Source: Pelomyxa schiedti
Taxonomy: Eukaryota; Protista; Evosea
Reading direction: 5' to 3'
Length of the DNA stretch: 58,143 bases
NCBI GenBank assembly: GCA_020536535.1
Contig: JAHLWZ010000891.1
Coordinates: 1 to 58,143 of the forward strand
In this document: positions 11,627 to 58,143 of the stretch, piece after piece
How positions within the stretch are numbered: the first letter of the stretch is position 1
Layout of the letters: every line of letters begins with the position of its first letter
Translations under genes and position numbers: made by a program
The notes under the pieces: model-generated
Database searches by the model: none
Told to the model about the DNA's origin: nothing
Seen by the model: the letters and a program-made list of their open reading frames with translations, nothing else

Positions 11627-14249
11627 TTACTCGGACACAATGGCACGGCACTTTTTAGCCATTTCCACGCGGTCTATCCACTCATTTAGTTGTGTTCGTA
11701 GTAAGGCGTCAGACGGGGAATCCGTGAGTGAGGCCAGTAGAACCTTGCCTCGTCCCAAGACGGAATCATCCTCCACCCTCCAAGGGCTCAATTCAGAGAA
11801 GAATGCATTGGCGTACTCGCGGGTGTGGTCCGCATATATAGTGCGGACACACGTGAAGAATTCGGCAATGAAAGGAGCAGTGACGTCGCGCTGGTGGAAC
11901 CAGTTGAACCCGTTCATGCTCGCGGAGGCTTCGTGAAGGGATTTCCAGGCACTTGGCTTGAGATACAGGTCCCACATCTTGCGTTTCACGTCGATAGACC
12001 AAACTGATGACCGGCAGCTCATCAGCGCACGCACCCCGGCTGCGCTGCTGTCTCGTTGTCCGTCGGATTCGGCGGCTTCAATGGCACCGGGTATGTTCCA
12101 GGAGCAAGAGGCTTGAAGTATGTTCCAGCGCAAATCTTGGGTGATCCACTTGGGGTTGGTACTCATGAGACCGAAAAGCTCTTCCACAGCACTTTTGTTT
12201 TTGTAGCTCCAGGCCACAGCATACCGTGACCAGGTGGTCTCTAGTCCTGTGAAATCACCTGTTGCGGAATTGACTATGGACATGGCGGCACTATACAACT
12301 TCTGTGCGTATGTGGGGATCATTGCATCGGGAACAAATGTAGACAGTATTCCTCCCACGTTGAGTAGTACAGCACTGAGGAGTCTCATGTTACGCTCCTT
12401 AGTAAGGTGCTCCACAACAGCAGACAAGAAGTGGGTTGCAGGAAGTTTGGCATCACGTACCATTCCGTATAGATCTAGCCACATCTGTTGCCTTGTGAGG
12501 GGATTGGTAAGCTTGTTCATGTGCGCAAGAACAAATGCCAAGCTCTCTTGATTAAGGCAGAACTTGCCATAGGCATGATCACCATGGTTAACATGCACAA
12601 AAGCTGGAATTGGCTCACCTTGAAGCCAAGCACCTTCGAGTACAATTTCGGGGAGAGCAGGAACAACTGTAGGGAGAATCCTCCTGATGGAAAGTGTTCC
12701 ATCTGCAGCTTGATCGTAAATAGCAACCTGCAAGGCATGGGAACGTAGTGTAGGGTGGGAAGGAGGGGCTGATTGCTTGATAATGAGCTTCTGAGAACCG
12801 GGGGTACCGCGAATCTCTGGCTCAATTGTGTTAAGGCCTGCAGTTTTTAGCCATTTCTCTGCCCAATCTGGGGGAGATTCCAATGAGGCCAGAAAATCTT
12901 CAGCACTGGTATTTGACCACTGATGTTTTCTGAAGTATTTTCGCATTCCAGTCCTAAACGCCTCCATACCAATCACAAAAACGAGTTGCTTAAGAACAGA
13001 TGCACCCTTTCCGTAAGTGATGCCATCAAAATTGAGGAAGGCGGAGGCTGTATCTACAACAGTACCTTGGATGGGATGGGTTGTAGAGAGTTGATCCTGT
13101 TTAAATCCCCAAAGCTTCTTTCCTCCATTGAAATCCAGCCAAGAAAATTCTGCAAACTCAGTTGCTTCCTTGCTGACAAAAGAGATATACGTTGCAAATG
13201 ATTCGTTTAACCATAAGCCATCCCACCAAATTGGGGAAACGAGATTTCCAAACCACATGTGGGCCATCTCATGCAAAACGGTTTCACATCTCCTTGCACG
13301 TTGGGCCTCAGTTGGTGGGTTGGGATACAGGTATACCTCAGTAAAAGTGACAGCCCCAACATTCTCCATTGCGCCTTGGTTAAACTCAGGGCAGAAGATT
13401 TGATCGTACTTGCTGAAAGGGAATGGCATGTCAAAGAAATCCTCGTACCATGCCAGGCCCTGCTTGGTAATTCGCAGAAGTTCCTCAACGTCACGCAATA
13501 AATACTGTTGCATTGACTGCCGGCATAGAATTCTTAGAGGAATTGTGGTCCCGGTCATCTTGCTTACATACTCACTGCTTACACTGTAATACGGTCCCAC
13601 AATAAGAGCATACAAATAAGTGCTGATAGCAGGAGTGTCAGCAAACGTAATAGTGGCAGATGTTCCATCAGCAGAAGGTTCACGCGAAACTTCTTTGGAA
13701 TTTGCCACCACCATCCAACCAGATGGCGCAGTGACCCGGAAGCTCAGAGCGGCCCTTATGCTAGGCTGATCAAAGCAAGGCAGCAGCCTGTGAGCATCAA
13801 ACGGCTCGAAATTGGTGTAGTAGTATCGCAGGGCGCTCTGAGGGTCGGTGAACTCGTGCAAGCCCTCACCGTCGTGATCATACTCGTTTTCGTACCGCAC
13901 AAGGACTGTGTTTTGTCCAGTCACCAGAGCCTCGGTAGGAAGGTACAGTCGCGCAGTTTCGGACGAGTAGCGCGCTTCAACAGTGTTCAAGGTAGCCGAC
14001 TTCAAGTTTGCAGTGACAAAGTCCAAGAACAACTCTGTGACATAATCAAAAAAAAAAAAAAAAAAAAGAACAAAAAAAGGGGTACACACCACGAGGTGCG
14101 GTTGCGGGAGGAGTAAAATTGAATGTGATGGTGCAATCTCCTGCGTAGGTCTTGTCCGACATAGACACATGCAACCTATACGTAACTCCCGAGACACATC
14201 CGCGCCGGATCTCCGCCTCCGCACATGTCAAGTTACCCAACTTACCCAT
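11627..14249 (-). CDS. pepN: Aminopeptidase N (M1 family, actinobacterial PepN-like) with ERAP1-like C-terminal domain; one intron near 14036-14093
   Basis: GAMEN, HEMAH-x18-E (HEMAHMWFGNLVSPIWWDGLWLNE), NFDGITYGKGASVLKQL, N-terminal GNLTCAEAEIR. Confidence 0.93.
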
Positions 14250-17815: not shown

Positions 17816-19285
17816 CTATGAGGCAGGATGGAGGCAAACTGGGCAGGTCTTCTTTGATTTGAGCCACCTATCTATGCACTCAGCATGGTAGAAGTGTAAA
17901 CACGGCAGTGTTCGCAATTGATCACCCTCTTCATACTCACAGAGGCACACAGCGCACTTGTTAGAACCGGAGGAAGGTTGCTCAGAAGACGCAGAAGCTG
18001 TAGTTGCGGAGGCTGTTTCCTTCCGTTGCGGAGTGGTTGCGGAATTTTGGCTTGTAGTTGTGGGAGTTGTGAATGTGTGAGTAGGCAGAGCGGAAATGGC
18101 AGCCGATGAAAGCCCAACCTTCACGTTGTCTTCATCCAATGCCAAGAGTTCTTCATACGTGGCGTCTTCTCCAGGGAACCTGTGACCGCCTCCGTGATGG
18201 TGATTGTGATACTGATACCCGTGCCCACCACGGCCGCGACCCCCAAGCACATAGTTCCAGGTTTCACCAAGTCCCCCTTGCAGTGTCATCAGAGCCCGTG
18301 CGTGCATCATGTCGTGGATTTGCTGGTGGTGCATTTGCATAGAATGAGAGCCTCCATGCATCTGCGGCAGCTGCGGGAAATTGGCCATCTGAAGCATCGC
18401 CGAGAAGCCATCGCCGTGGTTGGACATGTATACCTGTGGCTGCAGCAACTCGAGGTCATCACTATCCACCCCACCATCATCGGTGTCAGTGTCAGTGTCA
18501 CTTCCAGTTTCGTCGTCGTCGTCGTCATCAGTGTGGACTCTCCTTGCATCCCTGTCATCTTCGTACTGCAGGGCCATGGCCAGTTGGGTGTCCATGTCAA
18601 CAGCGGTGGTGGCTGTGGTAGGGGGCTGGCCACTCGTTGTAAGACTCCCTCCCAGTCCCAGAGCCAGAGCCGGCATTGTGGGAATCGACTCGGTGTCGCC
18701 GCCCTGCTGCATTTCCTCCTCCTGGAGTCTCCTCGCGATGGCGTCGTCGCCGGCCGGCGCAGTGGCTATGGCCGCTGTCGCGGGGTCTCCCCCTGTGGTG
18801 TGGCTTCCCCCCCTGTGGCTCGCCGTGGCGCCTGTGCCCCTGTGGCCCCTCCCGCGCGCCCCCCTGCCCCTCCCACCAGGCCCCGCGGTGCCAGCGAGCC
18901 CCGCGGCCGGCTGCGCAGCAACCCCGCCTCGCCCGCCGGCGCCTCCGACGGCCCCGGCCCCCCCTGCGCCCCTGTGCGAGCTGTGGTGATGGGAGTGCGT
19001 GTGGTGGCTGTGACTGTTGCTGTTGCTGTTGCTATTGCTATTGCTATAGCTGCCTGTGTTGTGCGGGTGATGGTGGTGGGTAGTCGGGGGCGGGGGAGGG
19101 GTGGCGGCGTGGGCGCCGCCGTCGGCGAGGACCAGGTGCTGGCGGCGCAGGATCTCGCCTGGGTCGATGCCGTACGCGTCCCTGACGACGGACAGCCCCA
19201 GGTGTTCGTCGTCGAGTTGGTCTTCCTCCTCTTGCATCCGCCTCGCCATCTCCTCGTCGGTCTCGACGTAGCTCCGGCCACTCAT
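17816..19285 (-). CDS. RING-H2 E3 ubiquitin ligase with ubiquitin-interacting motifs
   Basis: C-terminal CAVCLCEY...[25 protein letters not shown] and [16 protein letters not shown]-like [24 protein letters not shown] and [12 protein letters not shown]. Confidence 0.92.
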
Positions 19286-19387
19286 CTTCCTCCCGGTTTC
19301 GATTGAAAACTGATTCAGGGAAGCTGGAAACACGAGAAGAAACACGGGTGTAGTAGAACAGAGTAAGGTTGACTTTTTGTTGTGTAC

Positions 19388-33289: not shown

Positions 33290-35705
33290 ATGCCAGAGTC
33301 GGTGTTTGGGGTACCTCTGTCGAGATCCGTGCCGCCGGGGTGCTCTATGCCTCCCCCAATAGAGCAAGTAAACTCACGTTACTTACTTTCAAGATCTGAC
33401 TAGATCCACACCCTTAACCGTGGTTTTTTTTTCTCCCCCCTTTTCCCATGTTAGTTACTGAGCGTATTGACGTGTTTCACGCCGTCGGACCCTTCTTTAT
33501 TCGAACTGCCAATGACTCACCCCAAGGTGTGTTTCTATTTCCCAACGAGACTTCTCTCATAATTTTGTGTTGCCTGTCTTTTTTTTTTTTTGTTAAAAAA
33601 ACAAGGTTTCCAACCTCAAGTCAAAGTTTGATGCGAATGTTCCTCTTCCATTCGATGAGGAAGATAATCCTCAAGTTTTGGCTGCTCTGCTTGTACTGTT
33701 TTTACATCAATTACCACACCCATTGATTCCTCCACGAATGTTCACAACTGCCATGAGAGTTGGCAGTGTGTGTGATACACTTACAAGATTGCGGCTACTA
33801 CGCGCATTTATGGCCAAGCTCCCTCTTCTAGGGCGTGCCTTGACATTACAACTATTAGTATTACTGCACGCAACCCGAATCAATGAGATGCGGCTTGCTG
33901 CACTTTTCGCACCATACTTGATGAGGCAAGGACAGCACCAGAACCTGGAAGGAGGTGGCGCAGCCGATTATGGGGTTGTGTGCCTGGTTTCGGAGATGAT
34001 CAGTCAAGCAGATTACATCTCCTTGAACAAACAGGAGCCAGACAATCTTCCAAAGACAACAACAGCTACAAATGAGTTTGTATTACTCGCTACTGCTATT
34101 TGTGACTTTTCTGCAAACGGTGTGGAAACATTGCGTTGCGTTGTGCCCTAATTTAATATAGGCACTCCTGGCGTACTTTCATTCAATGCAGGAGACAGTG
34201 TACAACTAATTGATGCCCATCCAAACTCCTGGCTGGAAGCTTGTATTCATGGCGTTTTGGGATTTATACCGGAAGCTTATGTTGAGATAGTACCCGTTAT
34301 ACCAACAAATAAGCAGGCTAGCAGTACGCCACCAAATGCCGCACAGAAACGGGGCGTATCTAGCGCTAGATCTGTGTGGGTTCCATCCCAACACCCCCAG
34401 CAGTCGCAGCAATCTCAACTCCAAAACACACAACCAGCACAGCAACCCACAACACAAATTCAACATCAAGAGCCTACTCCACCCGATTTTGGAAATTCTC
34501 AAACAGTCACACGAACACTGTCATCACGATCCTATTCTACACCTATAATGCAAACTTCACACTTACCATCATCACTTTCCACCTCTGAAGAGTCCTCTTC
34601 CCCCACCGACTCGTCCGGCTGGACTGCTGCTCGCTTGCATGCAATTACTGAAGCTGACAATCCGAGCAGAACTTACCGAAGTACAAGTAACGGCAACAGT
34701 ACACAGTCATCACTTTCTATAACTCTTACAAGAACAACCTCCACAACATTTTCCACGCAATCTCCTACAACTACCACATGTACAACAACAGTAACACCTT
34801 TCAATACCGCACCAGAAGCTCTGCCACCCCCTCCATCAACTCCGTCATTAGGACTGCCTAACCGTCCTGCATACACTGCACCATCACCTCAACTTAGCAA
34901 GACCTACAGTGACATCAACCCAGAGGAAGGTTGGGATGAAATCCACGTTGTGGTTATTGGTACTGGAGGCGTCGGTGAGTTTTCCCTTTTCTTTCACTCC
35001 ACCCTCACTGACTATAGGAAAGTCCTGCTTTACAGTACGATTCGTTCAGAACGATTTTCTTGAGGAGTATGTATACACCCTCAAATTAATAATAATTGCT
35101 CAATTAACAAACTATTAAAGGTATGACCCAACATTAGGTAAGCGCGGTACTACCATTCCTTTATTTTAATAGTTGCAGAGGATAGCTACCGCAAACAATT
35201 CAGTGTGGATGATAGGGTCTGCTTTTTAAAAATCCTTGATACTGCTGGTATACTCGCTTAATTGTCTTTGCCGAACCTAATATATTCCAAAGGGCAAGAG
35301 GAATACAGTTCTCTCCGGTAATACAAACGACATAAAGTATATTCTTTTGACCACTGCAACAGGGACCAGTACATGCGCCTTGGTCAAGGGTTTATTATCA
35401 TGTGTTCAGTGACCTCAAAAGACTCACTAATTGCTGTTCCCACGCTAGCGCAAGCAATGCTCAAATGTAAAGACGCTGATGTAATGCCCCCGGCCGTTCT
35501 AGTAGCAAACAAGTGTGACTTACAAGCCGAAGTCACAGCACAGGAAGTTCAGGATGTTGCAGCCTCATTTAACATACCCATGTACATATCATCAGCCAAG
35601 CTCCACAAAAATGTGGACGAGGTATTTATAGCATTGGTGAGACAAGTAAGGGCGGTAGAAGCGACACACACCAAGAGCAAAAGGTCTGTCTGTTGTCTGT
35701 TGTAG
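33290..35705 (+). CDS. RhoGAP - SH3 - S/T/P linker - Ras-family GTPase fusion with a C-terminal CAAX box; multi-exon
   Basis: RhoGAP VFGVPL, LAALLVLFLHQLPHPLIP, LAALFAPYLMR. SH3 AICDF..LSFNAGD..SWLEA..GFIPEAYV. Ras GTGGVGKS, YDPTLEDSYRK, DTAGQEEY, NKCD, SSAK and terminal CCLL. Confidence 0.88.
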
Positions 35706-36067
35706 TGTGGGCTTGTTGAACAAAACAAAACAAAAAAAAAAAAACAACAAGATTTGCTCTGTTTGGACTGTTTGTACGGTACCGTATCGTGAAAATTCTT
35801 CCTTAGCAGGGTTTCTTTGATTACGTCAAAGCCTATCGAAATGACAGGAGAAAAATCTCCCCCAAATTCTACGCAAGGAGAAGGAAAAATTGGCGAGACG
35901 AATAAAAATAGGAAAGGGCACAGGAAAAAGAAAACAAAAAAAAACAAAACTTAAAAAAGGGGATCTTCCCTTTGTTGTTATCGACAGGTCAACGCGGCTG
36001 TGACGACACTAATCGTGAGATCCCCACGTACTACAACAACTACTACGAGCTACAAACGACCCAGAAA

Positions 36068-39000
36068 ATGATGGCAAACACGACCGACGTTGTCGTTCAG
36101 GCGCGCAAAGGAACGGATGCTCTAGCTGGGCTTTACGCTACCGTTGCGCTGTCTCGCACTTGCCCATTCTCGCCGTCTATGGACGCCTCGATGAGGTTGT
36201 CCACGACGCTGGTGAAGACACATTACTCCCCTCGCCCTGCTCCCCTGACGCCGTTTCCCGCTTCCGCTTTCGCCGACGTTGTTCTTCCGCAAAGCGCTGG
36301 TGGCGTAATCATGGACGCAGTCGCTCGGCTGGTCGTGCCTGGAACTCCCTCGAGAGAGCTACCGCTTTCAACCTCGGGATTGTCTGCTCCTTGGTGCCTT
36401 CTGCTACTTTTTTTTTTTCTTTTTTTTTTTTCCTTCTCCCCGAATGATTTCTAACCGTCGTTGCAGGTACAGCGAATTGGTGAGGATGTTTCCTAGTGAC
36501 CGCGAGGGCTTGTCTCGTGTCTTCGTCGTTTTGAAACCTCTGGCAATTGCCTTGGAAGAGTGGTGGTGGTGCTACCGGAGCACAAAAGATTCTGGTGATG
36601 CCCATCCCATCGTTCACGACGAACAACATGAAAAGAGGTGTGCTGCCTTGGCACAGACTGTCAGGCAACAGCTGGACAATGCTTGTCGACTTCTTCCAGT
36701 CAGCACAGGAAAAGAAAGAACCTGTGGAGAGATGTGGGCTGCTTGTGGAATCGAGGATCCTCTTCTAAGGGCAGCTTTGGAAGCTTCTGCATGGCCTTAT
36801 GTCCTGGGTGATGGAGCCAGTTTATTGTCATGGGTCGTTTCTGTCGCTGTTTTGAATAACGCTGGAGCAGCCCTTCCAAAATGGCTCTTTGCCACTGGTG
36901 GTACCCCCCATGATACTTTGCGGGCAACTTGGGAGGCTTTGGCTTGTGCAATTGAAAGTGATGCTAAGTCTACCTATGGCACAGCTGTCATTGGCCCAAT
37001 ATCCCCAACGGCTACAGTCAAAGTGGTTGACGACAAAGACAGGGTGTGTGGAGTCGCTTTGAGTGACGGAACTCTTTTGCCCTGCAGCTTCTATGTACGT
37101 GGAGAACCAGCTGAGCTTGGATTTAAGGAAGTTACCAGAAGGCACACTTGTGCCATTTTAAGAGGCATGCTCAAACCCCCAGTGTCTGGAGCTGTTACTA
37201 CGTTCCGTCCTTACACCGAATATGTCATATTAGGAGAGAAGGGAAAGTGTTTCCCCAGGTCTCCTCTGCCTTCTTTTGCAGACGGAATAGCCAACACTGC
37301 CATGTCAGTTGTTTTTTCACCAGCTGGAGATTCTTTTTACTTTACCGCAACAATGATGTTTGCCGATTCAAAGCCTTTTGTTAAAGAAGCGGCTGATTTG
37401 ATATCTGCTAAACTTCGGGACAGACTGACGGCTGCATTTGCTCTTGGATCTGGCTACTCATTTGCCACTGCTGGGCTAGATTCCGAGTTACGTGTCTTTA
37501 CTGTATACGCCAATAGCTACAAAACTTCTCCACTCAATTTCTGCAACGACCTCCTCACACCAGCCCCAGCACAAGGAATCCAAGGATTGTACAGTGGAGA
37601 TCCCTTACGCTTCATCGTGGGGAGCTCACCTGCAACGGCAATGAGGTTTGCTGATGTTGTTGCCCAGCAAGTTCTTTCCTCCTGGAAAGAGATTTTTCCA
37701 CTTTATGAATCGATGGATGACCTAAGGCTTCAACGGATTCTTGATGTTCGGTCTATGTCCCAAACACCAACAGAAACTCCACCCAGCCAAATTTTGGCAG
37801 TTACAGGAATTTCATGTAGGTTCCCTGGTTGCAACTCTGTCTCCGAGTTTTGGGATGTTTTGATGACAGGTAAGTGCACAATTAAACCTGTTGCACACAG
37901 TCGATGGGACAGGGACTTCTACACAAGGTTTTTCCCCTTTGCAATCCCATCAATCCTAACGTTCTTGTTAGTTCTGTAGCAGCAGAACCTGGAAAAATGA
38001 TTTGCGACAGGGCAGGTCTGGTTGATGATAACGAAATGTTTGGCTTTGACCACGAACTGTTCCGTATAAATGCAAGAGAGGCGCAGTTGATGGATCCTCA
38101 GCAAAGGGCTCTCCTTAAGGTTTCGTATGAGGCATTAGAAGGTTCTTTCTCGTTCGACCATTTTCTTTCTCTTACACTGTTCTAGATGCCGGAATACCAG
38201 TGGGGCTTGGGTCGGGAGAAGAAGGAGGCGCGGGAATGAATATTGGCGTTTTTGTGGGAGCTTCCACAACAGATTTCACCATACTTCAGAACATTGACCC
38301 TCATCCCCTTTCGGTGTACTCCAGTACAGGAAGTGCAACCAGCATTCTTGCCAACAGGATTTCATATGTGATGAATTTGAGGGGACCAAGCCACACAGCA
38401 GATAGTGCCTGCTCTTCGACAATGGTAGCATTTGACAAGGGCTGTCAGGCCATCAAGATGGGTGACTGTCACAGTTGCCTCGTTTGTGGAATAAATGTTT
38501 TGCTCAATCCTTGCACTTCTGTTGGTTTCACCAAATTGGGCATTCTGGGGCCTGATGGGCTGTGCCGGGCTTTTGATTCCAACACTGGCGGATTTGTTCG
38601 TGCTGAGGGTGCTGGAAGCCTTGTTCTCACTACTCTAAAGAGAGCTGAGGAGCAAGGGGACAGAATTTACGCTGTTGTTTACGGAAGTGGCACGAACTCT
38701 GACGGCCATAGCAAAGTTGGTCTGACGATGCCAGGTGTTAAATCACAGGCAGCTCTTCTACGTCGAGTTTATGCTGCTTCTGGTGTTAATCCCCGTGAGA
38801 TTGAAGTTATTGAAGCTCACGGAACGGGTACCGCAGCAGGCGATCCAACAGAAGTTGAAGCATTGGGTACCGTCTTCCGGTGTGGCCGAACAGCAAGCAA
38901 ACCCTTAGTAGTCACTTCTGTCAAGGGAAATCTTGGGCATCTTGAAAGTGCCAGTGGAATGCCTGGCCTCCTTAAAGCTGTTTTGTCCTGTTACTATTCT

Positions 39001-42000
39001 GTAATTCCTAAATCCCTTCACATCGATACGCCAAATCCGCACATTGCCTGGGAGCAATTGCGGGTTACTCCAGCAAGGGAGCAGATGCCTTGGAACTCAG
39101 CGAAGAGGATGATTGGAGTAAACTCCTTTGGTTTTGGTGGTACAAATTCACATGCTATAATTGGAAATTACATCCCTTCTTCTACACACGCCTCTAGTTC
39201 CCCGAACTTTTCTCCGTCTGGCAAGCGACAGGAGTTGCTACTCCTCAGTGCTAGAACACAGGAGTCTGTCAAAGCGTACGCTGCGAAGCTGGCCCGTTAC
39301 CTTCGGGCTAACCCAAATCTCCCTCTTTCCGATGTGTCCTTTACAACGACTTGCCGAAGGACCAAATTTTCTTACAGTTTGGCGTGCATTGTATCCTCAG
39401 TGAAAAATGCTATTACTACTTTGGAAGATCCAAACACCTGGCAACCCGCTGTTACCAAGAAAGAGTTTACCGCCCCTTCAGATATAGCCTTCGTGTTTTC
39501 TGGTCAGGGAACTCAGTGGCACGCAATGGCCCGTGATTTGATTACACAAGGTGGTTTGTTGGGTCCACCAGCGGAACCGGCGTGGAAAGAGGCTATCATT
39601 TTTTGCAAAGTTCTGAAGAAAATTGATAGGTTACTGAAGCACGAGCACTCCACTTACCTTGCCACTCTCTCCCAAGAAGAACGAGATAAGCTTCCACCAG
39701 AGGAGCTGGAGACACCAGACTTGGTGACAAACTTTACCAACGATAAGGACCAAAATGCAATTTCCGAGTGTGTTCGCTCTCAGCATTCTGTTTTTGCTCT
39801 ACAAGTAGCAACTGCCCGAATGCTCATTGCATGTGGAATTAAACCAGCGTGTACCATGGGGCATAGCAGTGGCGAGCTTGCGGCCCTTCACATTGGTGGC
39901 CACTTTGCTCTTGAGGACTCTGTGCCTTTGTTGTACCATCGTACTCGTCTTCTCAATAGATCTTCTCGATTGGGAGGTAAGATGATTGCTGTAGCGACCA
40001 CCCTTTCTAAGGGTCTCGAAATGATTAAGTCTTGGCCCAACTTATGCATCAGCGCATGGACATCACCAAATCAAATCACAATATCTGGTGATGCTGACCA
40101 GGTTCAAAAGCTGAACCAAGAGTTAAAGAAAGCAGGTGTACGAAATACCATTCTTAATGCTGCTGCAGCGTACCACAGCCCTCACCTTGAAATGCTCAAG
40201 GCAGATGCCTTTAAGTTTATCAACAGAAGCTCTGACCTCTTGAAAAAGAAAGGTACAGCTCGCTTCTTCTCAACTGCAATGTGTGCGGAGCCGGCCTCAT
40301 CCGCTGATGAGACAATGATTTTCAGTGACTACTCCAGCAGGATTGACGCCACTTATTGGTGGACTGCCATGAGAGAGCAGGTCAACTTTTACCCTGGTTT
40401 CCGTAACCTCGTCAAACACTCAAAATGCCGCGTATTCATTGAAATTTCTCCCTCTCCCGCTCTCATTTCCCCAATGCGTGAGGCTCTGGATACCATCAAT
40501 CTTCCCGATAAAACTCTCGTTCTCCCTTCCCTCAACAGAAGGAAAACTGACAGGCAAGCAATCCTGGAACTCATGTTTATGCTTCAGGCAAGTGGTGCCT
40601 GCCCGGATTTAAAATGGAGTACAGTTTTATCTGTTCGTACCCCTGCAATTTCTTCCGCTCCAAACCAGAAGTCAAACTACATACTTCCCAAGTTGACCAC
40701 TCTTCCAAACTACTCCTTTGAGGAAACTGTATTCATGGTTCCCCTGCCTCCGTTGGTTGATGAAGTTCTTCGGGGTAGCAAAACCTTCAAGCACCCGTTT
40801 GTCAGAGCACTGACTGATGCTCCAACTGAATGTTGGGTTACTGAGTTATCTAGAACGAGGATCCCGTGGGTCAAGGACCACTGTGTCCAAGGTCTATCTT
40901 TGTCCTTTTTTGTTTTGTATGACTTTTCCCTCAGGATCTGTTGTTTTCCCTGCTGTCGCATACGTTGAAACTCTTCTGCAGGCCGGTACCCTACTTTTCC
41001 CTGGATCCCCGTTTGAGCTTTCCGAAGTTGCCTTCAAAAATATGTTTATTCTGGAAGACTCCAAAGTCTACAGCTACAGAGTATCTGTGGCCAGTTCAGG
41101 TATAGGTCGCAGCTGGCTTGATTTGGAGATTCACACAAGAGAGGAACCACACACAAATGAGGGACCCTCGCAGTGGAGATTACACTGCTGCGGAAGAGCA
41201 ATTCCTCTCAAGTCGCTGACTTTTACAAAGAGTAAAGCCCAAGCAGCACTGGGCAATATGAAAAAATGCACTCAAGTCATTGATCTTCCTTCTTTCTATA
41301 CCAATCTGTTTAAGGATGGTCTGCAGTATGGACCTCTGTTCAATAGTCCTGCACAGAGTATCACTTATGCAACCGACAAATCGTACACCTGCGGACATAT
41401 GAAACCACCTCAGGGTGTTTTGGAGGATAAGGATCTTCCTAACTTCCAAGGTCCCCATCCTGCCATTCTAGATGCATGTTTGCACCCCGTTGTCTGTCTT
41501 CAAGATACTTCCAATGGGCCTGCTCTTCCTGTTTCTTTTGGACGAATTGTTTTGTTGAATCCTAGAGCAGCCGAGTCAACAACGCCTTCACCCCTAACAG
41601 CCCCAACTGGAGAGTTTTATGTGTGCTGTGAAAGTGGCCCAGACGCTAGCTGCAAGCTTCTTGTTGTTGCCCACCGTGAGTCTCCTGATAAGGAACCAGT
41701 TCCAGTTATAGTTTTGGAAGAATTAAGGGCTAAGTCACTTTCATCTGTTGAAGCAAAATGCCCACCCTACAAGTGGCTGGCTGGGAAATGGGATTCAATT
41801 GCTTCTACCAAGGTAAATATGAGACACGGCACAGGCTGTGTGTGCTGTCTTTGCCGACAGAATGCGGACGCTCTTGTTCCCATCCCTCGGAAGATGTTTT
41901 CAGAAGGCTTGGCAGCCTTAGAGAGCGTGACCTCTAAAATGCCCCGAAATTTTGCAAGTCTGTGTTTCCTTGTCTGCCTCTCCAGGCTGGGATTCTACCC

Positions 42001-45000
42001 TCCTGTGGGTACCAAGTTTACCGTGCAGAGTGTTCTTACTCACTGCCACGTTAAAGCAGAACACCATCGATACTTTGTGAGTCTCCTTCTCTTCTTGACC
42101 GATATGGCGCCTCCCTACTTGGAATGCGTCACACGACCCAGCAATTTCCTCGAGATGCAATTTGTTGTTAAGAAACAGTGGGGTGACTATGTAGCTGAGG
42201 AAAAGCGCTTCCAACAAGTAAATTCCCAAGTGACCAGAGATCTACCCTCGCTCTGGCCCGCGAATGTTCTTGTGAATAGGGTTCGAGAACACTTCGAGAG
42301 TCTTGTTCAGGAAGGTGACTCTGGTGCCAGCTTTGTGACGATGCTATTTGAGGTTGTGGAAGCCTACTACTCTCAAATTCCCATGATAACTCTTCTCAAT
42401 AATACCATTGCTGAAATGGTGGGAAATTATATCTCTTCTGTTTCCAAGGATTGCCCAATCCGCATTCTGGAGGTTGGTGCTGGTACTGGTGGCACAACGA
42501 AATCCATTCTTCCCCTTCTCCCTCAAGACAGAACTACATTCTACTTTACGGATTTGTCTAAGGCTTTTAACAAGTTTGCGTATGCACTTAAAGAAAAATA
42601 CCCTTGTGTTGAATTTGCTGTGTTCAATGCTGAGAAACCGTGTGAGGACCCAAGTTGGACCGGGTTCTTTGACATTGTAATAGCCGCTAACGTGCTACAC
42701 GCAACTACTAACCTCAATAACACACTGAGTAACATAAGACCCCTACTCAAACCGTCTGGCATCATTTTCTTGAATGAATTGGAAAAAGAGGAAGTTTCTG
42801 CCCTAGTGTTTGGTTTGGCTTCAGGGTGGTGGTTGGCAACGGAGGAGGACCGCCGACAAAACTTCTCTCCTCTGCTTACTGGGACTCAGTGGTCAAAGTA
42901 CCTTGTCAATGCCGGTTTCACAAACCCCAAATTCTTCCCACTGGCGAAGCAGGATAGATTTGCTTTCAACCTCGTAATGGCTCAGGCACCTCCACCTGTT
43001 TCTTCCACCGGTACACCTTCTCAGTTGCAGCCATTGTCTCTCATTGGTCGTCCTCTCCCTCTCCCTCCTGCAAACACGATTGTTTTCTGGTTGGGGTCTG
43101 AGGAAACCCTCGAGACAACCTTACGCAATAAACCAGTTCTGGAGGCCCTCGGGTGTGAAATTGTTCCCGTGACCGTCATTGCAAGTGGTCACAAAATGCC
43201 TGCGGCTCAGTCTGGAGAATTATTTGTCCAGACGAGCAACCCTGATTCCTTCAATACCTTAGTAGATGAGACACTGACAATGAGTCAGAGAAATCAACCA
43301 CAACGCAAGATTGTCTTTGTTCACGCTACAGCTCTCCTTTCAGCTTCTCAAGTTAGCTCAGATTGTGAACCAGATATTGACTGGATTAAAACTAAAGTCC
43401 GTCGTGATCTGACATCAATTCTTTTCCTGGTCCAAGCAATAACCCGCAAAAACTGCAAGTGTAAATTGTTGATTCTTACGAGCGGTGCTCATCAGTGGTC
43501 TGACGTGGAGGAGCATAATGTCCCGTATTCTGCAGCAATGGTTGGGTGGGGAAGAACCATTATGTCAGAAATTGGTACCGAGTTGCATACAACCCTGGCA
43601 GATGTTTCTTCTCAGCAAAGACAAATCGAGTTGGTCTCTGCATTGGAGATTATGCTCGACGACCAAGTTGACTCTTCGTTCGAGGAATACACGATGAGAT
43701 TTGATAAGCGTGCAGTTTATCGTATTTATGAAGCACCTGATGTAGCTGCAGTCAGCGTACCTCATAAGCAGGTTATTCTCAGTGGCCCTCATTCTGACAG
43801 CCCCATACCTTACCGAGCTGAATACCAGCCACAACGACGCAAAATCTCGACACAGGAGCGCGGAATTCCTGAGCCCATCCCTATGGACAATGTTGTTGTG
43901 AAGATTGTTGCTGCTGGTCTCAACTTCCATGATGGTATGGTTGTGACAGGCGCAATGCCCCCTGGATCATCTGACTGGTCTATCGGCATGGAGTTCTCTG
44001 GCGTTGTTCAAGCCGTTGGAGAAGCTGTTACCAATGTGAGGGTAGGGGACAAAGTTGTTGGATTTGGTGATGATTTATTTGGAAGTCACGCATGTGTCCC
44101 TGCTCTGGATGTGGAAAAATTCCCAGATACCATGTCCTTTGAAGAAGCTGCTTCTATACCAAGTGTATTCTGCACTGCTTATGTGGGGCTCATCGAAATG
44201 GCTCACATCCAAGCTGGAGAGACCGTTCTTATCCACAGTGCGGCGGGTGGTGTTGGTATTGCTGCAATCCAACTTTGCAAGATGCGAAACTGCAAGATCA
44301 TTGTGACTGTTGGTTCCAAATCGAAAGAAGAGTTCCTAAAACTCTATAACGTGGATCATATCTTTGACTCTCATACTGGAGATTTTGAAGACCAGGTTAT
44401 TCCTCCTAATCTTGTTTTGCCACACTAATAAGAGCGAAAGATCAAAAAACTTGGTGGCTGTGATGTTGTATTGAATAGCTTGAAGAGTCCCCTGATGGAA
44501 GCCTCTATTCGTTGTTTAAGAGATTTTGGACGGTTTGTTGAAATTGGTAAGGTGGACATTTTCAATGGAGGCAAACTGCCGCTTTCTCCATTTAAGAGGT
44601 CAATCGCTTTTATGAGCTTACATATGGACTTCCTTGAGTCTTCCGTTTTGCGCAAGTCCATGAAGGAAGTAATGAAACTTATTGAGAAAGGTTTGATTAA
44701 ACCTCTGCCTGTAACAGTCTCCCCTATGTCCCATGTTGATAGTGCACTCGCTGCCATGGGACATGGAACTCATGTAGGAAAGCTCGTGGCAAGTAATGCA
44801 CGTGACCGTATTGTCAAAGTAACACCTGAGGGCTCTGTTCACACAATAAAAAAGACTGGAGCTTACGTTGTCACTGGCGGCACAGGTGGTGTTGGCTTTG
44901 CTATGGTAGAGTACCTAGCGCACCTTGGAGCTGGATGTGTTGTGGCAATGTCCAGATCTGGAGGCTCAAGCAATCTCTCCCAAGCCATTTCTACCGTAGA

Positions 45001-46946
45001 AGCAAAAACAGGGTGCAAGATTGTGATTTGCAAATGCGATATTGGACAAGCTACAACCGATGTTGTTACTGGTGTCATAAAATCTGCAATAGGCACCCTA
45101 CCAGTACTTGGCGTGGTGCACTGTGCCATGGTCTTGCGTGATAATGGTCTAGCAAGCATGACCGTGGACGAGCTGGAGGGAGCTGTGAGCCCCAAGATCT
45201 TTGGTGCTTGGAACGTTTTGGAAGCTCTGAAGCGTCTTAGCCTGAAACCAGAGTGGTGGGTTTCCTATTCTTCCGCCGCAGCACTTGTGGGTGGGCAGGG
45301 ACAGGCCAACTATAATGCCGGGAACACTTTCCTTGACTCTATGATTAACTTCTTGCGCCGTAAAGGAATTGACTCCTGGTCATTCAACCTTGGTCCAGTG
45401 CAGGATGTTGGTTACGTTGCAGGCAATAAGCAAGCACAGGAAAATGTTGCCTTATACGGTGTGCGTTCCCTGACTGGACAGGAGGTTCTTGACACTACTT
45501 TTAAATGTGCCATGTGCCTTGGCACACCCCGGCCGCCCCCGTCATGCAGTCTGGGAATGATGGATGTGGAGTGGAACACATTCTTCCGCAATCCATTTGC
45601 CAAACTTTCCAAGAGATTTACACTACTTAGTGACAAAGATACCGCGAGCTCTAAGTCTGTTAATCTGAAAGCACTTTCTTCGGAAGGAGATGCCGAAGCC
45701 CTCACACCAAAAGTCATTCAGTACCTCGCAACGGCTACTGCCAGTGTTCTTCACATGCCGGCAGGTGATGTCGATGTCAACACGCCTCTCACTCAACTCG
45801 GTGTTGACTCTCTAGTCACCATTGAACTACGTCAACAAATTTTCTCGCTTTTACACGTTGACGTACCAGTAGTTGCACTACTTAAAGGACCAACTCTCAC
45901 GGAGTTGGCTTCTTACTTGATCTCTAATCTTAAGGGAAGTGCGGCTGGAGCAGCCACCGAGAAACCCAAAGAAGCAACTGCAGCGTCAACAGCAGCCACA
46001 TCCAGTGCCGCAGTGTCTGCTCTTCCATCTTCAGCCTCTATTTCTACTACCAGCAGTAATCCCTACAAGGTAACAGCTCTTCCACGCCCAGCCGGGAACA
46101 CCACACCGGTCACTTGCAGTTTGATCTGTTTCCCATTTGTTCAAGGAACGGCAGCAGCGTTTGAAAGTTGGCCTGAGCGATTACCCGCCTACGTTGAGGT
46201 TCTTGTAACGTCGTGCCCGAATCACGTTACCGTGGGCCCTGAGCTCCCTGCTGCCCTTTCTGCCTTCTTTGCGTCGAGACCCGAGAAACCTACCAGGTCC
46301 ATATTCTATGGTATGAACCTCCACCGTCAAAATTCAATGTCTTATCTTTCACAGGTCACAGCACAGGTACTCTCTCAGCTTATTCCGTTGCTTGGCGATT
46401 CCAACGAGGGGATCCCGAATGTGCAAACATTCCGCCACCTTGCGCTATCATTCTTTCAGCACTTCGTCCACCTCTCCCTGATGCTTTGGTCCACACCCCA
46501 CCACTGCTTATTCCGAGCAGTGTGCATCCTTTGATTGCCCAGGCTCATCAAATGAAAGAGCCTCCAATTACCTTGCCCATGCTGGTACTGCAACCAACCG
46601 GAGACGCTACAAACACTGCCGAAACACTCGGCAAATGGCAAGAGTACACAACCAACCCTCTCTTCATCCTTCGGCAAGTGCCAGGACCCCATCTCAACAT
46701 CGTGACTCACAAAGAACAACCAACCACTTACATATCCAGCTTCATCAACCGCTGTGTCAATCTCCCCCTTCCAACCAAAACGTCAACTGACCACCCAATG
46801 GAGGACGAAGTTGTATCACGCAAGCGTGCCCCCGCAGACCACCCCACTCCTCAGGATGCTTCAGGTTCATTTCCTACTACTTACTTTTTACTCTTCTTAC
46901 CAAACACAAAACAGACAAGAAGAGGAGGGTAGACGGCCGATTTTGA
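36068..46946 (+). CDS. Type I highly reducing polyketide/fatty-acid synthase: [CrtI-like]-KS-AT-DH-cMT-psiKR-ER-KR-ACP-TE; about 7 short introns
   Basis: KS DSACSS (38401), [61 protein letters not shown]. c[72 protein letters not shown]|HSTG, PGPH. Confidence 0.95.
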
Positions 46947-52598: not shown

Positions 52599-55500
52599 TT
52601 AATTGAGGAACTTCGTGAGGATGGCATCGAATGTCGGGCGTAACTGTGGGTCGTGGCTCCAACAGGCCTTGAGGAGACGTTCAGCCCAATCTGGGCATGT
52701 CCATCTGTGGCTGAAGACCTCCGGGGCTTCCAGCAGTACCCTCTGGGGGTTGAACGGCTGCGCAGCAAACAGGCAAGATACGGAGCGGGATATCCTCTGT
52801 TCGTTGCCGAACGGGTCTGGGTCCGAGGGCTGCGGCGGAGTGGGGCCTATCTCGCCGCTGTGGATGAACGGGACCATAGCGTTCTCCATGAAAACGCCGT
52901 GGAAGAAGCGGTGGTCGGTGTCGAGATGGCCGAAGGGGTGGGTGAATGGGTCGATGAGTGACCGGCAGAGAAACGCGAAGCTCCACACGTCCACGGGCCG
53001 GAGCTCGGATTTGATGTCAGCGTGCATCTCCGGAGGATAGAATATTGACACCTTGCGGGGGTGCAGCTTCTGCTTCTCGTGCACCGTCTGGCACAGTCCA
53101 AAGTCGGCAACTTTGGCAAACGGGGGGCTCTCCAATGAACAGATAAATACATTACCTTGTTGGAAATGTTAAGTTTCAGAATGGTGTACGTATTACCCTC
53201 ACCTGCGTGAAGATCGAGATGAGCTATGTGCTGACTGTGCAGATATTGCATAGCGGTTGCAATGTCGGTTATTATTTGTTTGCGAAGTGCAACAGGGAAT
53301 ACTCTCTCAAATGAGCATCGCTGTTCATGTTCACTGCTGTACAGACTGGTGAATTTCTGTTGGCAAATTGTTATGAGTTCACTCAGATCAGGTTTGCTCG
53401 GTCGCACTTCTCCAAAGAATGTCTTCATGTCGGTTGTGAGGGTGGGAGGAGGAATGAGTTCCATTACAATTTGGATACTCTCGGATACCCTGACACCAAG
53501 CATTTTGACAATGTTTTCGTGATTGAGTTCGCTCATGAGTCGGATTTCTGCCTTGCACTGTTGCAAGGCATCTTGCACACTATAGTCTGATTTTACTTCT
53601 TTAACAGCAACAAGGAGTGGCTTGTTGTTCATCATCATCTTTCCCTCAAATACTGATCCAAAACACCCTTCACCCAATTGTCTCCCCGTCAAGTGAATTT
53701 CCTTGGTGAGAATCTGCTCAAGGTCTGGGGCAGCATGTGTAACATGCACAGATCGGCCTTCTACGGGGCAAGTAAGGAATCCATCAACTTTATTTGCCAG
53801 GGTAAGAAAGCAGTCTTCCAGAGACCAATAGTGCACGGGCAACAACGTAACTGGGTTCGTTGCTGGGAAAAGCTCGACTAACTGCCTTTGGTCATTAGGG
53901 AGACAATAAGGACATGCAACAAGGACTTCTACACTTGTCATGGATAGTTGTAGAAGAGTTTCTATCATTTGAACAACTCTAGTGAAGGAAGTGGCCTTAT
54001 CAGTTCTGTTGGCATAGAGAGCCCAAAGGAGAATTGTTTTCCTTTCCTTGTGAACACTGACAGAAATACTCTGCGTCCTGGAACTTAAAACCACTCCCGT
54101 ATTCCAAATTAAAACTGGGGAAAAACCAGGAGTGCAAGACTGCAGCTGTGCCAGTATATCTGAGAAAAAGGAGAAGGCCTCCAAAGGATTCTTGCTGATG
54201 AACAATCTTGCTTGGCGCCATTGAGGCAAAAAATCTACATTGGTGATAAGAAATGGTGTTGAGGGAAGATATGCAGGTAGAATCAGTTGAGTTATCGTGT
54301 GATCCCCAAAGCACAGTGTGTATGGGATGAAAATACTGAAAACTTCTAGTAGTCTGCAGGTTTTTTGCAATGCCTCATCAGGAGAAGTGAAGCCCAAGAT
54401 CCCTTGGCATGTATGTTGAATGGGGTTGTCACTACAGGAGGCAGCCCTGACCTCATGCATTGCTTTGTTGAACCACTGAGGTTTCAGAACGACAATATTG
54501 GATAATTCAGAGTCATATCTTAGTTTTGATTTGAAGTGAATAAGAGTGCCACAATCCTCTAAAAAATCGGCGCACATCATAGCCTCTTTCTCATTCACCG
54601 GTTTATTAGGTGATTTAAAAATGTCCAAGAACTCATTCCATGTAATAATCTCTTCAGATTTGTTGAGAACAGTTGTTCTCATGTCACACCATTTCCTTGG
54701 AACAAAGTTCTTGTGGGATCTAAAAACTTGTTCAAAAAGTAAATCCAGGAAGTCTTTTCGCGTTATCTGTGTAATCTTCTCTTGCCCCACAGGTGGTCTA
54801 GGCATGAAACGAATGAGTTCCACACGAGTTTTAGGATTTCCTATTGAAGCGGGCACCAAAACTCTACTTGAAGCAAGCACCAGAGCAACATTTCCTGTCT
54901 GAATCGATTCTAAAACACGTAGACGCTCATTTACAGGGATGATATCCAGGCGAGTTCCAACGAGGACTATGATTGCGGAACTGTGTTGCCGGTGCAAACT
55001 ACAAACCCAAGTTGAGATTTCCCAATTGGTTGCAGTAGAATCCTTCCTAAGGGCTTCCAAACTGAAGCATACAATAAAAACAGAACAGCTCTGGAGAAGA
55101 ATTCTGTATGTTGGTTGCTGTTTTGCTGTGTGACGGTCAAAAAAAAACTTCTGCATCTTGGAAAAAATTACCAACAATGTCCCAAGCAGTGACAGTCCAT
55201 TTAGATGAGACCCGCCCCTCTCCTGAGAGCCTACGTTGATTTCCACTTGGAGTAAGCCCACTATGTGTGTCTGGTTTACTTTCATGCATGAATTCAAAGT
55301 CGTGGACTTGGGTATCTGTATGATCAGAGGCAGCTTTCACTGATTTATTTGCCATATGCAGTAAAAACGTTGTTTTTCCACAGTTCGGTTCCCCAACAAG
55401 AGCTATCTTAGTGTGATAATATTCAATAGGGTCGCCACACTGAAGATATGCCTTAGTGGACTCCCAGTCTTTTCTGCAATTGGTAGGAATGGAAGAGAGG

Positions 55501-58143
55501 GGGTTGCCCTCCAATTCAACAGTAGGAAACCTGGAAAGCTTGGGAGGAAGCTGATGGAACTGGTTGAAATTGAGGTACACTATTGGGGCACAGAAAATAT
55601 CAAAGAAATTTTCAGGGAGAGTGTCCAAAGAGAGGTGAGACAAATGTAATTTCGAGAGACTGTAGGACTTGTGCAGGGGTAGGGAGAAATTGACATTTAC
55701 GGAATTTTGGTGATGCTCATCTATGCACCGTCTTGCAAAAAAATTTCCAAGCCTATCCAGTCGTGCTGAAACCCTTTTCTGGCTAACCATCTTTTCCAAT
55801 ATGGGATCACAGTCGGAGGTTGGGATGTTGAGCAGTTTTTCAGTGAAGAGAGCGGACAATGTATATCTACATTTGCGAGACTGCTGGACTGCCTTTAAAA
55901 TTTCTATGGACTGATCTGGTGCCAGTGAGATGCCTGCATGAGTCGATAACACACAGGTTGGGAGGCCACTATTAAAACGGCATAGGGCAGTAAAGCTTGA
56001 CAGAAGGTTGTGCAGTAGACCAGGGGATTCTGCTCGAAGAATTTTTTGGTACGTTCCGAAGCAATCTCTACAGTTACAAGGTTCGTCCCCGGCAATGCAG
56101 TTAGACTGGCGGAGAAGATTGGCATAGTAAAAAGAATTCATAAACTCTTTGTTCCGGCTCGTGACAAAGGTGACTACTGTTTTCAGTTCTTGTGCAGTGG
56201 TACTATCTATTATGCTCTTATTTCGTTGATGAACTGACTTTTGTTGATATTACCTTCAATCTCCAGCCTGAGAAGGCTGAGGTTCCCTTCAAGATGTGTT
56301 CGTATTTGTGCTATATGTTCCCTCTTTTTTGTTTAAAAAAATAACATAGTCAAACTAAAAAGTCTTTCACCTGAGGGACATCAGTAAAATTTCTAGTGCA
56401 ATCCAAAGCTGTGAGGGTGCTGTTGTACTTGAGGCTCCCAAAAATTTGGCTGAGCGCCTGGGGAAAGAGTTTGTTTCCTATTACCCTTTGTCACCAAGTC
56501 AATGGAAAATTTGTTCAACAACCACTTATGTTTAGATAGCGGAGTGACGTGTTTATAGTGATTATCTCGGCAAAGGTTTCTCCCGTGTAAGGCTCGAAGT
56601 TATTTCCTGTGCCAATTAAAATTCGAGTTGAAGCTCAGAGTTACCTTGAAGGTCTAATGCCTTGATTGTTGAGTGTACTGTCAGTACACGCGAAAGACTT
56701 ATTAGCATATCGCTGCTAAGCTGAGCGTCTTTAATCACAGTCAGTAATGGTTTAGGGTATTCACCAACATGCTAGAATTAGAACAGAAACAGAATAGTTC
56801 CCCAGAAAGCAAGTTAATTGTTTCATTATCTTCTGCCTGTTGTTCTTCTATTTGTGTAAGTTGTCAAATACCTGAACTACAACCTGGAGGTATTTTTTCT
56901 TGATTTCTTCTTGTTTTTTTTCACAGACTATTTGGTCCCGGGAACCATCTGACCCAATGTAGAAAATGGGTTTTTGTGAGGTGACTGCCTCAGTAATAGT
57001 CGAAGGATTATTCTACAAAAGTTAAGTTGAAAAAAAATAAATAAAGTGATAAGTACCACTGCATTAAAGATGCCCATGAGAGAGACACCATACTCAAGAA
57101 GGGTGCGGCCACATGGTGAGAGTGTACTTGCAGTTCGGTCCCAAAGGTAGTTCAACAAAGAAGAGTCGATTTGCTGAAGAAGATTACCACAGAGTAAAAG
57201 AATAACTACCATACGTCTGGCAACTGACCCAACTCTAACAATACACGTAAACATCTTACTTGGCTATTACGTACAGCATGAAGCACAGGGGGTATCTTGA
57301 TGAATGAGTTTTGTAGTCTAAACTCTCTTCCGGCATATACCTCACCAGGAGATGGAGAATATTTCGCCAGGAGCTCTACAATGCATTTTACATGGCCTCT
57401 TCTAATTGAGCAGTGCAATGGTGTCTTGGTAAGTCAGTATTGCATTAAATACCACAAAGAGCTAGATTACTTCATTACTCTATGGTGGAGTAAGGGAAAC
57501 CAAAAAAAAGTTCTGTGAAGGTACTCTCTGTTCAAGGTTCAGGAATAGAGGTTTAATCAAGAAAAGACGTAACAAGGAACATGTAAAAATTAGTCAAAGA
57601 ACAACAGCAGTCACACTTACATCCTATGAATATTTCAGGAGTCAATAAAAAAGAGTGGTGGGATACATGAATATTACACAGGGCCTCCTTGTTCAGTAGT
57701 AACCGCACAAAATTAGTCCATCCACTTTCAGCAGCATAGTGAAGAAGTACCTATTGTACATTATTGTGGAATGAATTACTGAGCTCACACACCCTCTGTG
57801 ATCATATCGATTGGAGGGAGGAAAAAAACCTGTCAACACAAACGAGAGCAATAAAAATTGTACCTGCTATAAGCAAATTAAGTCTTATCGAGTGGGGAAT
57901 TGAAAAAGGAGGTGATAGTACATTCTATCGTAGGAGAGATTCCAGTAAGAAGTTAGCAAAAGTGGGCTTGAAAGTGCAGGAGGGGAAAAGGATTTTACTT
58001 CCTATTGGTAGTCAGAAGCATTGCCAATAACGCAGACCCGTAGGTCGAGTCCGCATAACTCTCATCCACATTAACTGGCACACGTGGAGCAGTAGCCGAC
58101 GTCGGACTCATACTTGGTGAAGAGCTGAAAGACGGGAGAGTGA
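52599..58143 (-). CDS. Roco protein kinase (ankyrin - LRR - ROC - COR - TKL kinase), 5' part beyond the window; multi-exon
   Basis: ANK LLHYAAESG, PLHCSIRRGHVKCIVELL. LRRs ending LEGNPLSSIP. ROC LVGEPNCGKTT, VLVGTRLD. COR FLEDCGTLIHF, VVLKPQW. Kinase GEGCFG, VAVK, HLDLHAGN, VADFG, DVWSF, CWSHDPQLRPTF. Confidence 0.9.

Follow-up and report, generated by a model that had tools for sequence, protein, structure and literature searches.

Iterative highly reducing type I polyketide synthases (PKSs) and animal-type fatty acid synthases (FASs), such as LovB, the Dictyostelium PKSs, and mycocerosic acid synthase, share with the gene described here the domain order KS-AT-DH-cMT-ER-KR-ACP and intact catalytic motifs. 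By established PKS logic, such a domain set followed by a TE would be iterative and fully reducing, with the capacity to methylate with SAM and to release a free acid. The bacterial monomodular reducing PKSs that were nearest to our KS in a quick tree and by BLAST, which we take to be WcbR-like, open directly at the KS, some of them with the identical order KS-AT-DH-MT-ER-KR-ACP.

A second set of relatives concerns the N terminus. Rab GDI and REP are GR2-fold proteins that lack redox activity and bind prenyl lipids. In the CrtI/CRTISO/RetSat/PYROXD2 group (COG1233, PF01593 clan), CrtI is a membrane-peripheral enzyme with a hydrophobic tunnel; its residues 8 to 10 and 34 to 40 contact FAD, which is the sole redox cofactor and itself promotes membrane association, and desaturation needs FAD plus O2 or quinones (PMC3382138). 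Besides, CrtI-like proteins have been found in fatty-acyl chemistry. UfaD, of the furan fatty acid pathway in Rhodobacter, is phytoene-dehydrogenase-like, has a preference for a methyl-branched chain that is the product of a SAM methyltransferase, and needs O2 in vivo (PMC7380195), and the acyl activity of the anammox homologs kuste3336 and kuste3607 is only putative (PMC4790861). Both UfaD and the anammox proteins are stand-alone and have a predicted FAD domain, in contrast to the fused protein reported here. As for amoebae, fatty acid synthesis has been reported missing in Mastigamoeba and Entamoeba, which take fatty acids from food (PMC8136499).

We analyzed a window of 58,143 nucleotides, contig JAHLWZ010000891.1 of the amoeba Pelomyxa schiedti. 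Ordinary eukaryotic neighbors on its minus strand are a Roco-type protein with GTPase, COR-A, and kinase domains (52847-56141), an M1 aminopeptidase (11627-14224), and a RING-H2 protein (17816-19345). The PKS gene, on the plus strand, has 7 exons that join in phase without internal stops and encodes 3523 amino acids (Table 1). Behind a head of about 550 residues, Pfam assigned the order KS-AT-DH-cMT-ER-KR-ACP-TE on one polypeptide, the TE match being weak. The protein thus begins with this head rather than with a KS, SAT, or loading domain and ends with a type-II-like TE, and it differs in both respects from highly reducing PKSs and animal-type FASs.

Table 1. Positions in the window of the features of the head-PKS gene, with the evidence for each
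Feature	Position	Strand	Evidence or remarks
Exons 1 to 7	36068-36393, 36467-37927, 37972-38141, 38186-40891, 40935-44395, 44441-46310, 46355-46932	+	Phase check
Intron 1	36394-36466 (73 nt, phase 2)	+	GT..AG, poly-T tract, branch-like CTAAC; RNA confirmed
Introns 2 to 4	37928-37971, 38142-38185, 40892-40934	+	RNA confirmed
Intron 5	starts 44396; acceptor 44434 or 44440	+	Predicted from phase and motifs
Intron 6	46311-46354	+	Predicted from phase and motifs
Exon 1 part of head (residues 1-109)	36068-36393	+	Degenerate beta1-alphaA start; RNA on 36340-36392 only
Main body of head (residues ~110-515)	36467-37680	+	Helical domain from FP motif, mid GG, GVxLxDG hairpin, substrate-domain landmarks, GLYSGD, C-terminal helix
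Head-KS linker (~35 aa)	37681-37790	+	Same frame, no stop; bridged by RNA contig
Ketosynthase (KS)	37791-39300	+	Pfam; contains introns 2 and 3; Cys DSACSS 38401; His motifs 38818, 38926
Acyltransferase (AT)	39480-40580	+	Pfam; GHSSG 39859, AYHS 40168
Dehydratase (DH)	40790-41580	+	Pfam; spans intron 4; His motif at exon junction; Asp DACLH 41471
C-methyltransferase core (cMT)	42440-42780	+	Pfam; SAM motif intact 42467; His NVLH 42689
Enoyl reductase (ER)	43880-44790	+	Pfam, motifs; spans predicted intron 5
Ketoreductase (KR)	44858-45410	+	Pfam; NADPH motif 44876; catalytic Tyr motif 45299
ACP	45719-45925	+	Pfam; Ser in GVDSL 45800
Type-II-like thioesterase (TE)	46100-46932	+	Weak Pfam TE; GHSTG across predicted intron 6; His GPHL 46684
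Stop codon	46930-46932	+	

The catalytic residues of the synthase are intact (Cys/His/His in KS, Ser in AT, His/Asp in DH, the SAM motif and His in MT, Tyr in KR, and Ser in ACP), and both ER and KR keep their NADPH motifs. In searches of PDB sequences, the synthase matched the CurJ cMT, mycocerosic acid synthase (MAS), LovB, and Dictyostelium PKS16; the first three were recovered with the exon encoding DH, MT, and ER, where the CurJ cMT was the best match for the cMT (E 1.4e-32), and the TE exon weakly matched the type II thioesterase 3qmw (E 0.05). Domain order and motifs point to an iterative highly reducing type I PKS, the iteration being suggested by the single module, and the AT appears malonyl-like in specificity. 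The most likely product, as predicted from these domains, is a saturated, SAM-methyl-branched fatty acid freed as the free acid.

The gene is a single, intact, expressed one. The fusion of head and PKS is genuine, because head and KS are read in the same frame and are connected by a spliced RNA contig. The RNA evidence comprises public single-cell RNA contigs from four runs of one sample. One contig (37400-38139), with two introns spliced out, places at least the final 100 residues of the head on one mRNA together with linker and KS, and further contigs cover 36340-36848 of the head. Since 36068-36339 and 36849-37399 have no RNA cover, leaving residues 1 to 90 uncovered, we infer the start codon and the full-length continuity from the open frame. 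Intron 1 is supported by one contig that joins 36392 to 36466 and by a second whose loose end coincides with the end of exon 1. The first-pass annotation held that an open reading frame at 36444-37979 makes the fusion independent of any splice model. Indeed, this frame runs without a stop from the head (residues 110 to 550) into the start of the KS, but the beta1-alphaA segment lies on exon 1 and needs splicing, and the ATG at 36444 taken as the start sits inside the RNA-confirmed intron 1. The Ras domain upstream ends at 35705 and belongs to a separate gene, because its transcript ends near 35713. The short GT-AG introns and eukaryotic gene neighbors indicate that the PKS gene is nuclear and not from a symbiont contig.

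To place the head, we searched and folded its exon 1 part and its exon 2 part separately. The head matched no Pfam or NCBIfam family, and PF01593, PF13450, and TIGR02734 gave no significant match; among PDB sequences only a rubredoxin reductase appeared, over 29 residues (E 0.58) at the GVxLxDG hairpin. Neither a 5.8-billion word search, phmmer over 1.84 billion protein representatives, a metagenome scan, nor plasmid tblastn returned a match. The head is single copy in its own genome, of which 52,367,397 bases in 5337 contigs were searched (a single-cell genome, incomplete; PMC8887013). Custom HMMER family HMMs likewise found nothing in the head, and exon 1 alone gave no match and no usable ESM hit.

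Two independent lines of comparison pointed to the CrtI/RetSat/PYROXD2 group. By ESM features, the exon 2 part was closest to phytoene-desaturase-family and PYROXD2-like clusters with a score of 0.95, which about 1 in 100 shuffles matched; the 10 best named hits all fell in one clan, and the ~146 to 151 of 256 shared features fit a distant relative. In an ordered-block test, we chained along exon 2 eight conserved blocks that an automatic selection had taken from 24 diverse members of the family. The score of 33.4 lay above all 120 controls, namely, 60 shuffles (17.1 ± 3.9; maximum, 29.0) and 60 unrelated PKS slices (18.4 ± 3.5; maximum, 28.5), and the margin was thin with longer blocks (26.0 versus 25.2). 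Conservation is strongest in the block with the FP motif, where the helical "membrane-binding" domain begins, at residue 117 here and at residues 113 to 115 in Pantoea CrtI. A RetSat-centered hhalign comparison was collinear over 106 to 160 columns and not significant (P 0.08), a PYROXD2-centered profile was marginal (P 0.02), and the glocal score of the head was equaled by 5 of 120 unrelated slices. The motifs quoted in the first-pass annotation as CrtI/RetSat/PYROXD2 landmarks are all present: TDVVV (36083), an 11-residue motif (36125), WLFATGG (36882), a 10-residue motif (37041), KLRDRL (37410), TSPLNF (37524), GIQGLYSGD (37575), GSSPATA (37620), and, at the KS, ILAVTGIS (37791). The head resembles the CrtI group in length (~515 residues), in ESM features, and in how the FP, GG, GVxLxDG, P-x-G, TP, and GLYxG elements are ordered and roughly spaced, whereas it lies below 20% identity and is fused to a megasynthase.

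Structure prediction, proposed earlier as a check, carried little weight. A single-sequence AlphaFold model reached a pLDDT of 39, which makes fold searches with it meaningless. A model guided by a RetSat-like alignment (pLDDT 55) matched carotenoid desaturases (4REP, Z 8.5 over 279 residues; 5MOG, E 5e-4; Atlas TM 0.51 to 0.56), but these matches are circular, and the model serves as illustration only, the MAFFT alignment behind it being out of register at residues ~60 to 170. Because the alignment statistics are marginal and the unbiased model failed, descent of the head from a CrtI/RetSat/PYROXD2-type flavoprotein is probable rather than proven; it is the best assignment, as had been proposed from the landmarks. 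That the frame is open over 1.65 kb and expressed despite divergence beyond HMMER recognition suggests that the head has been kept as a folded domain.

The cofactor signature of the head has been eroded. In 133 of 138 reference proteins, GxGxxG is followed 17 to 20 positions later by an acidic residue at the end of beta2 and then by GG. We confirmed the earlier observation that GxGxxG is broken: it occurs in no plus-strand frame of the 5' part of the gene, and a hidden intron that would restore it was rejected, since 354 hypothetical junctions create none. Exon 1 also has neither the acidic residue at the end of beta2 nor the first GG where they are expected, its sole GG being at residue 78. 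With the ADP-binding fingerprint lost, the head has probably given up FAD as well. Three elements of the FAD domain persist, namely, the mid GG, GVxLxDG, and GLYSGD; they might reflect continued flavin binding, although they have a structural role too. The segment before GLYSGD is either ~20 residues shorter than in the family or lacks its first TPL motif, depending on register; the spacing from TSPLNF to GLY is 19 in the head, compared with 17 for the second TP and 38 to 39 for the TPL of the family, so TSPLNF may correspond to the second TP and not to the TPL. The head works at most in the manner of a CrtI-fold domain, and because it lacks the defining FAD motif of the family, we class it as degenerate and CrtI-like rather than as a desaturase.

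The only clear CrtI-family gene that we found elsewhere in the genome is a RetSat-like gene on another contig (L029:2170-4273, minus strand; G000:C562, about 57170-59270), which is free-standing, contains introns, and has an N-terminal hydrophobic segment. Its GxGxxG is intact, so the motif loss in the head does not reflect a peculiarity of the organism as a whole. No phytoene/squalene synthase (PF00494) was found in the incomplete assembly, which makes a carotenoid role for the head unlikely and sets this genome apart from the setting of the CrtI group. PPTase genes are present. Independently of this locus, a pyruvate:ferredoxin oxidoreductase-like stretch (L028:1-3010, plus strand; G000:C177:21000-24010) overlaps a 969-residue frame with an FAD-binding motif; the two may represent either a PFO-flavoprotein fusion or adjacent genes.

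The KS shares about 47 to 49% identity with its best relatives, which among those returned are all bacterial, and 37 to 43% with Pelomyxa paralogs; in the quick tree it sat on a long branch (1.65) near the bacterial monomodular reducing PKSs, a placement that is unsure. PF01593 or PF13450 occurred in none of the 120 best KS-AT relatives (proteins of ~500 to 1575 residues), and at six near bacterial KS loci no such gene was fused or adjacent (0/6). An operon origin of the fusion is thus unsupported, no CrtI-like gene lying upstream of the KS at these loci. The nearest bacterial relatives (L067, L069, and L072) lie beside alpha-oxoamine synthase, sulfatase, or capsule genes, a pairing that is reportedly fused in another Pelomyxa PKS. 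Other inspected Pelomyxa PKS loci open with adenylation-type domains or short extensions and carry no similar head. Genome-wide, there were 39 ketosynthase-N matches on ~17 contigs, a rich PKS set for an archamoeba. The genome also contains a small, very strongly divergent KS family (L032:5295-8750, L033:4748-8359, and L034:3617-5605, all plus strand; G000:C151, C753, and C351); the C151 copy had a branch length of 7.8 in the quick tree, and two members start with MGN, which may signal N-myristoylation, and continue with a proline-rich stretch. The earlier statement that no known PKS opens with a CrtI-like domain agrees with what we found in the literature searched and in the sampled KS relatives; no description of a PKS-CrtI fusion was found at title and abstract level, in a body of papers that covers few subscription journals.

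We favor, with a probability of about 0.55, the reading that the head is a CrtI fold without flavin that now serves a synthase of methyl-branched fatty acids by binding membranes or lipids. The iterative highly reducing PKS would build a saturated, SAM-methyl-branched fatty acid, and the TE would release the chain as a free acid. The head, CrtI-type in origin, would have lost the ADP-binding fingerprint and then FAD while retaining the helical membrane-facing domain and the scaffold of the substrate tunnel. Its role would be non-redox: to anchor the synthase to a membrane, to hold a long hydrophobic starter or product and pass it on, or both. Rab GDI and REP offer a model for a flavoprotein fold reused in lipid binding, as an analogy only, PF00996 having no match here. 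Because FAD promotes the membrane association of CrtI, binding to membranes may be poor once the flavin is gone. The searches returned no homolog of the head, and a single sequence offers no comparator for tunnel conservation or purifying selection.

Of the two mechanisms proposed in the first-pass annotation, the dead fold is thus the favored one, given that GxGxxG, the acidic residue of beta2, and the first GG are missing, and the O2-independent desaturase is less likely. The head would in that case be a divergent but active flavoenzyme (a desaturase, cis-trans isomerase, or saturase) that modifies the methyl-branched acyl product, either while this is bound to the ACP or once it has been released, with a quinone as acceptor or by non-redox chemistry of reduced FAD. 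We regard this as unlikely, and as slightly more doubtful still its fuller form, in which one polypeptide makes the methyl-branched fatty acid and then desaturates or isomerizes it without O2 through a CrtI-type domain with a non-canonical flavin site. The C-terminal elements of the FAD domain are kept, CrtI uses quinones and isomerizes anaerobically (PMC3382138), UfaD introduces a double bond into a methyl-branched fatty acyl chain (PMC7380195), anammox CrtI homologs are encoded beside FabF and ACP genes (PMC4790861), and the genome has no membrane fatty acid desaturase (PF00487) above the Pfam cutoff. However, all three N-terminal fingerprint elements are missing and alternative splicing restores none, the head escapes both PF01593 and PF13450, which would normally catch an active enzyme, and the precedents are themselves limited by the O2 requirement of UfaD and by the anammox proteins lacking demonstrated activity. 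The opposite extreme, that the head is a CrtI-derived relic, a tolerated N-terminal passenger or structural spacer without further function, left by the fusion of neighboring genes, seems improbable to us: its extreme divergence, lost cofactor motifs, and single copy without relatives fit such a relic, but a full-length, stop-free, expressed domain with ordered landmarks would be unlikely to persist neutrally for as long as an identity below 20% implies, and a CrtI-like upstream neighbor is absent from the six bacterial loci.

It is also rather improbable that the motifs are coincidental and that the head has another fold or belongs to another GR2 member, such as GDI/REP or prenylcysteine oxidase. 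The HMMER/hhalign P values of only 0.02 to 0.08, the slices that reach the glocal score, the uninformative single-sequence model, and the silence of exon 1 in ESM would allow this, whereas the ESM score with its ten best hits in one clan and an ordered-block chain exceeding every control argue against it. A Rab GDI/REP identity in particular was rejected, since the PF00996 profile matches three other loci of the genome and not the head. Finally, an assembly or annotation artifact, or a working mRNA that starts near 37400 inside the head so that the PKS is made headless, is very improbable. No single RNA contig spans the whole head, and the bridging contig opens at 37400 with a template-switch adapter and carries, as single witness, an extra T in a T run at 37847. 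But no break interrupts the frame, transcription and splicing are documented at both ends of the head, and an identical adapter recurs mid-gene at 38350, 40377, and 41230, which points to truncated cDNA rather than a start site. A similar one-base T insertion at 39465 in one RNA contig is contradicted by two other runs, and both insertions are probably errors of RT or PCR.

Taken as a whole, the architecture is real, expressed, and apparently undescribed, and the function of the head is probably non-catalytic. The case is that of a single sequence with no ortholog found and a deduced product. Either outcome would add a building block to the megasynthases, be it a pseudoenzyme head that binds lipids or membranes or an O2-independent tailoring domain. 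If the desaturase reading were true, an anaerobe whose relatives do not synthesize fatty acids would have a way to make unsaturated or branched lipids for its membranes. An intact, expressed synthase of this kind bears on how the anaerobic amoeba Pelomyxa makes its own lipids.
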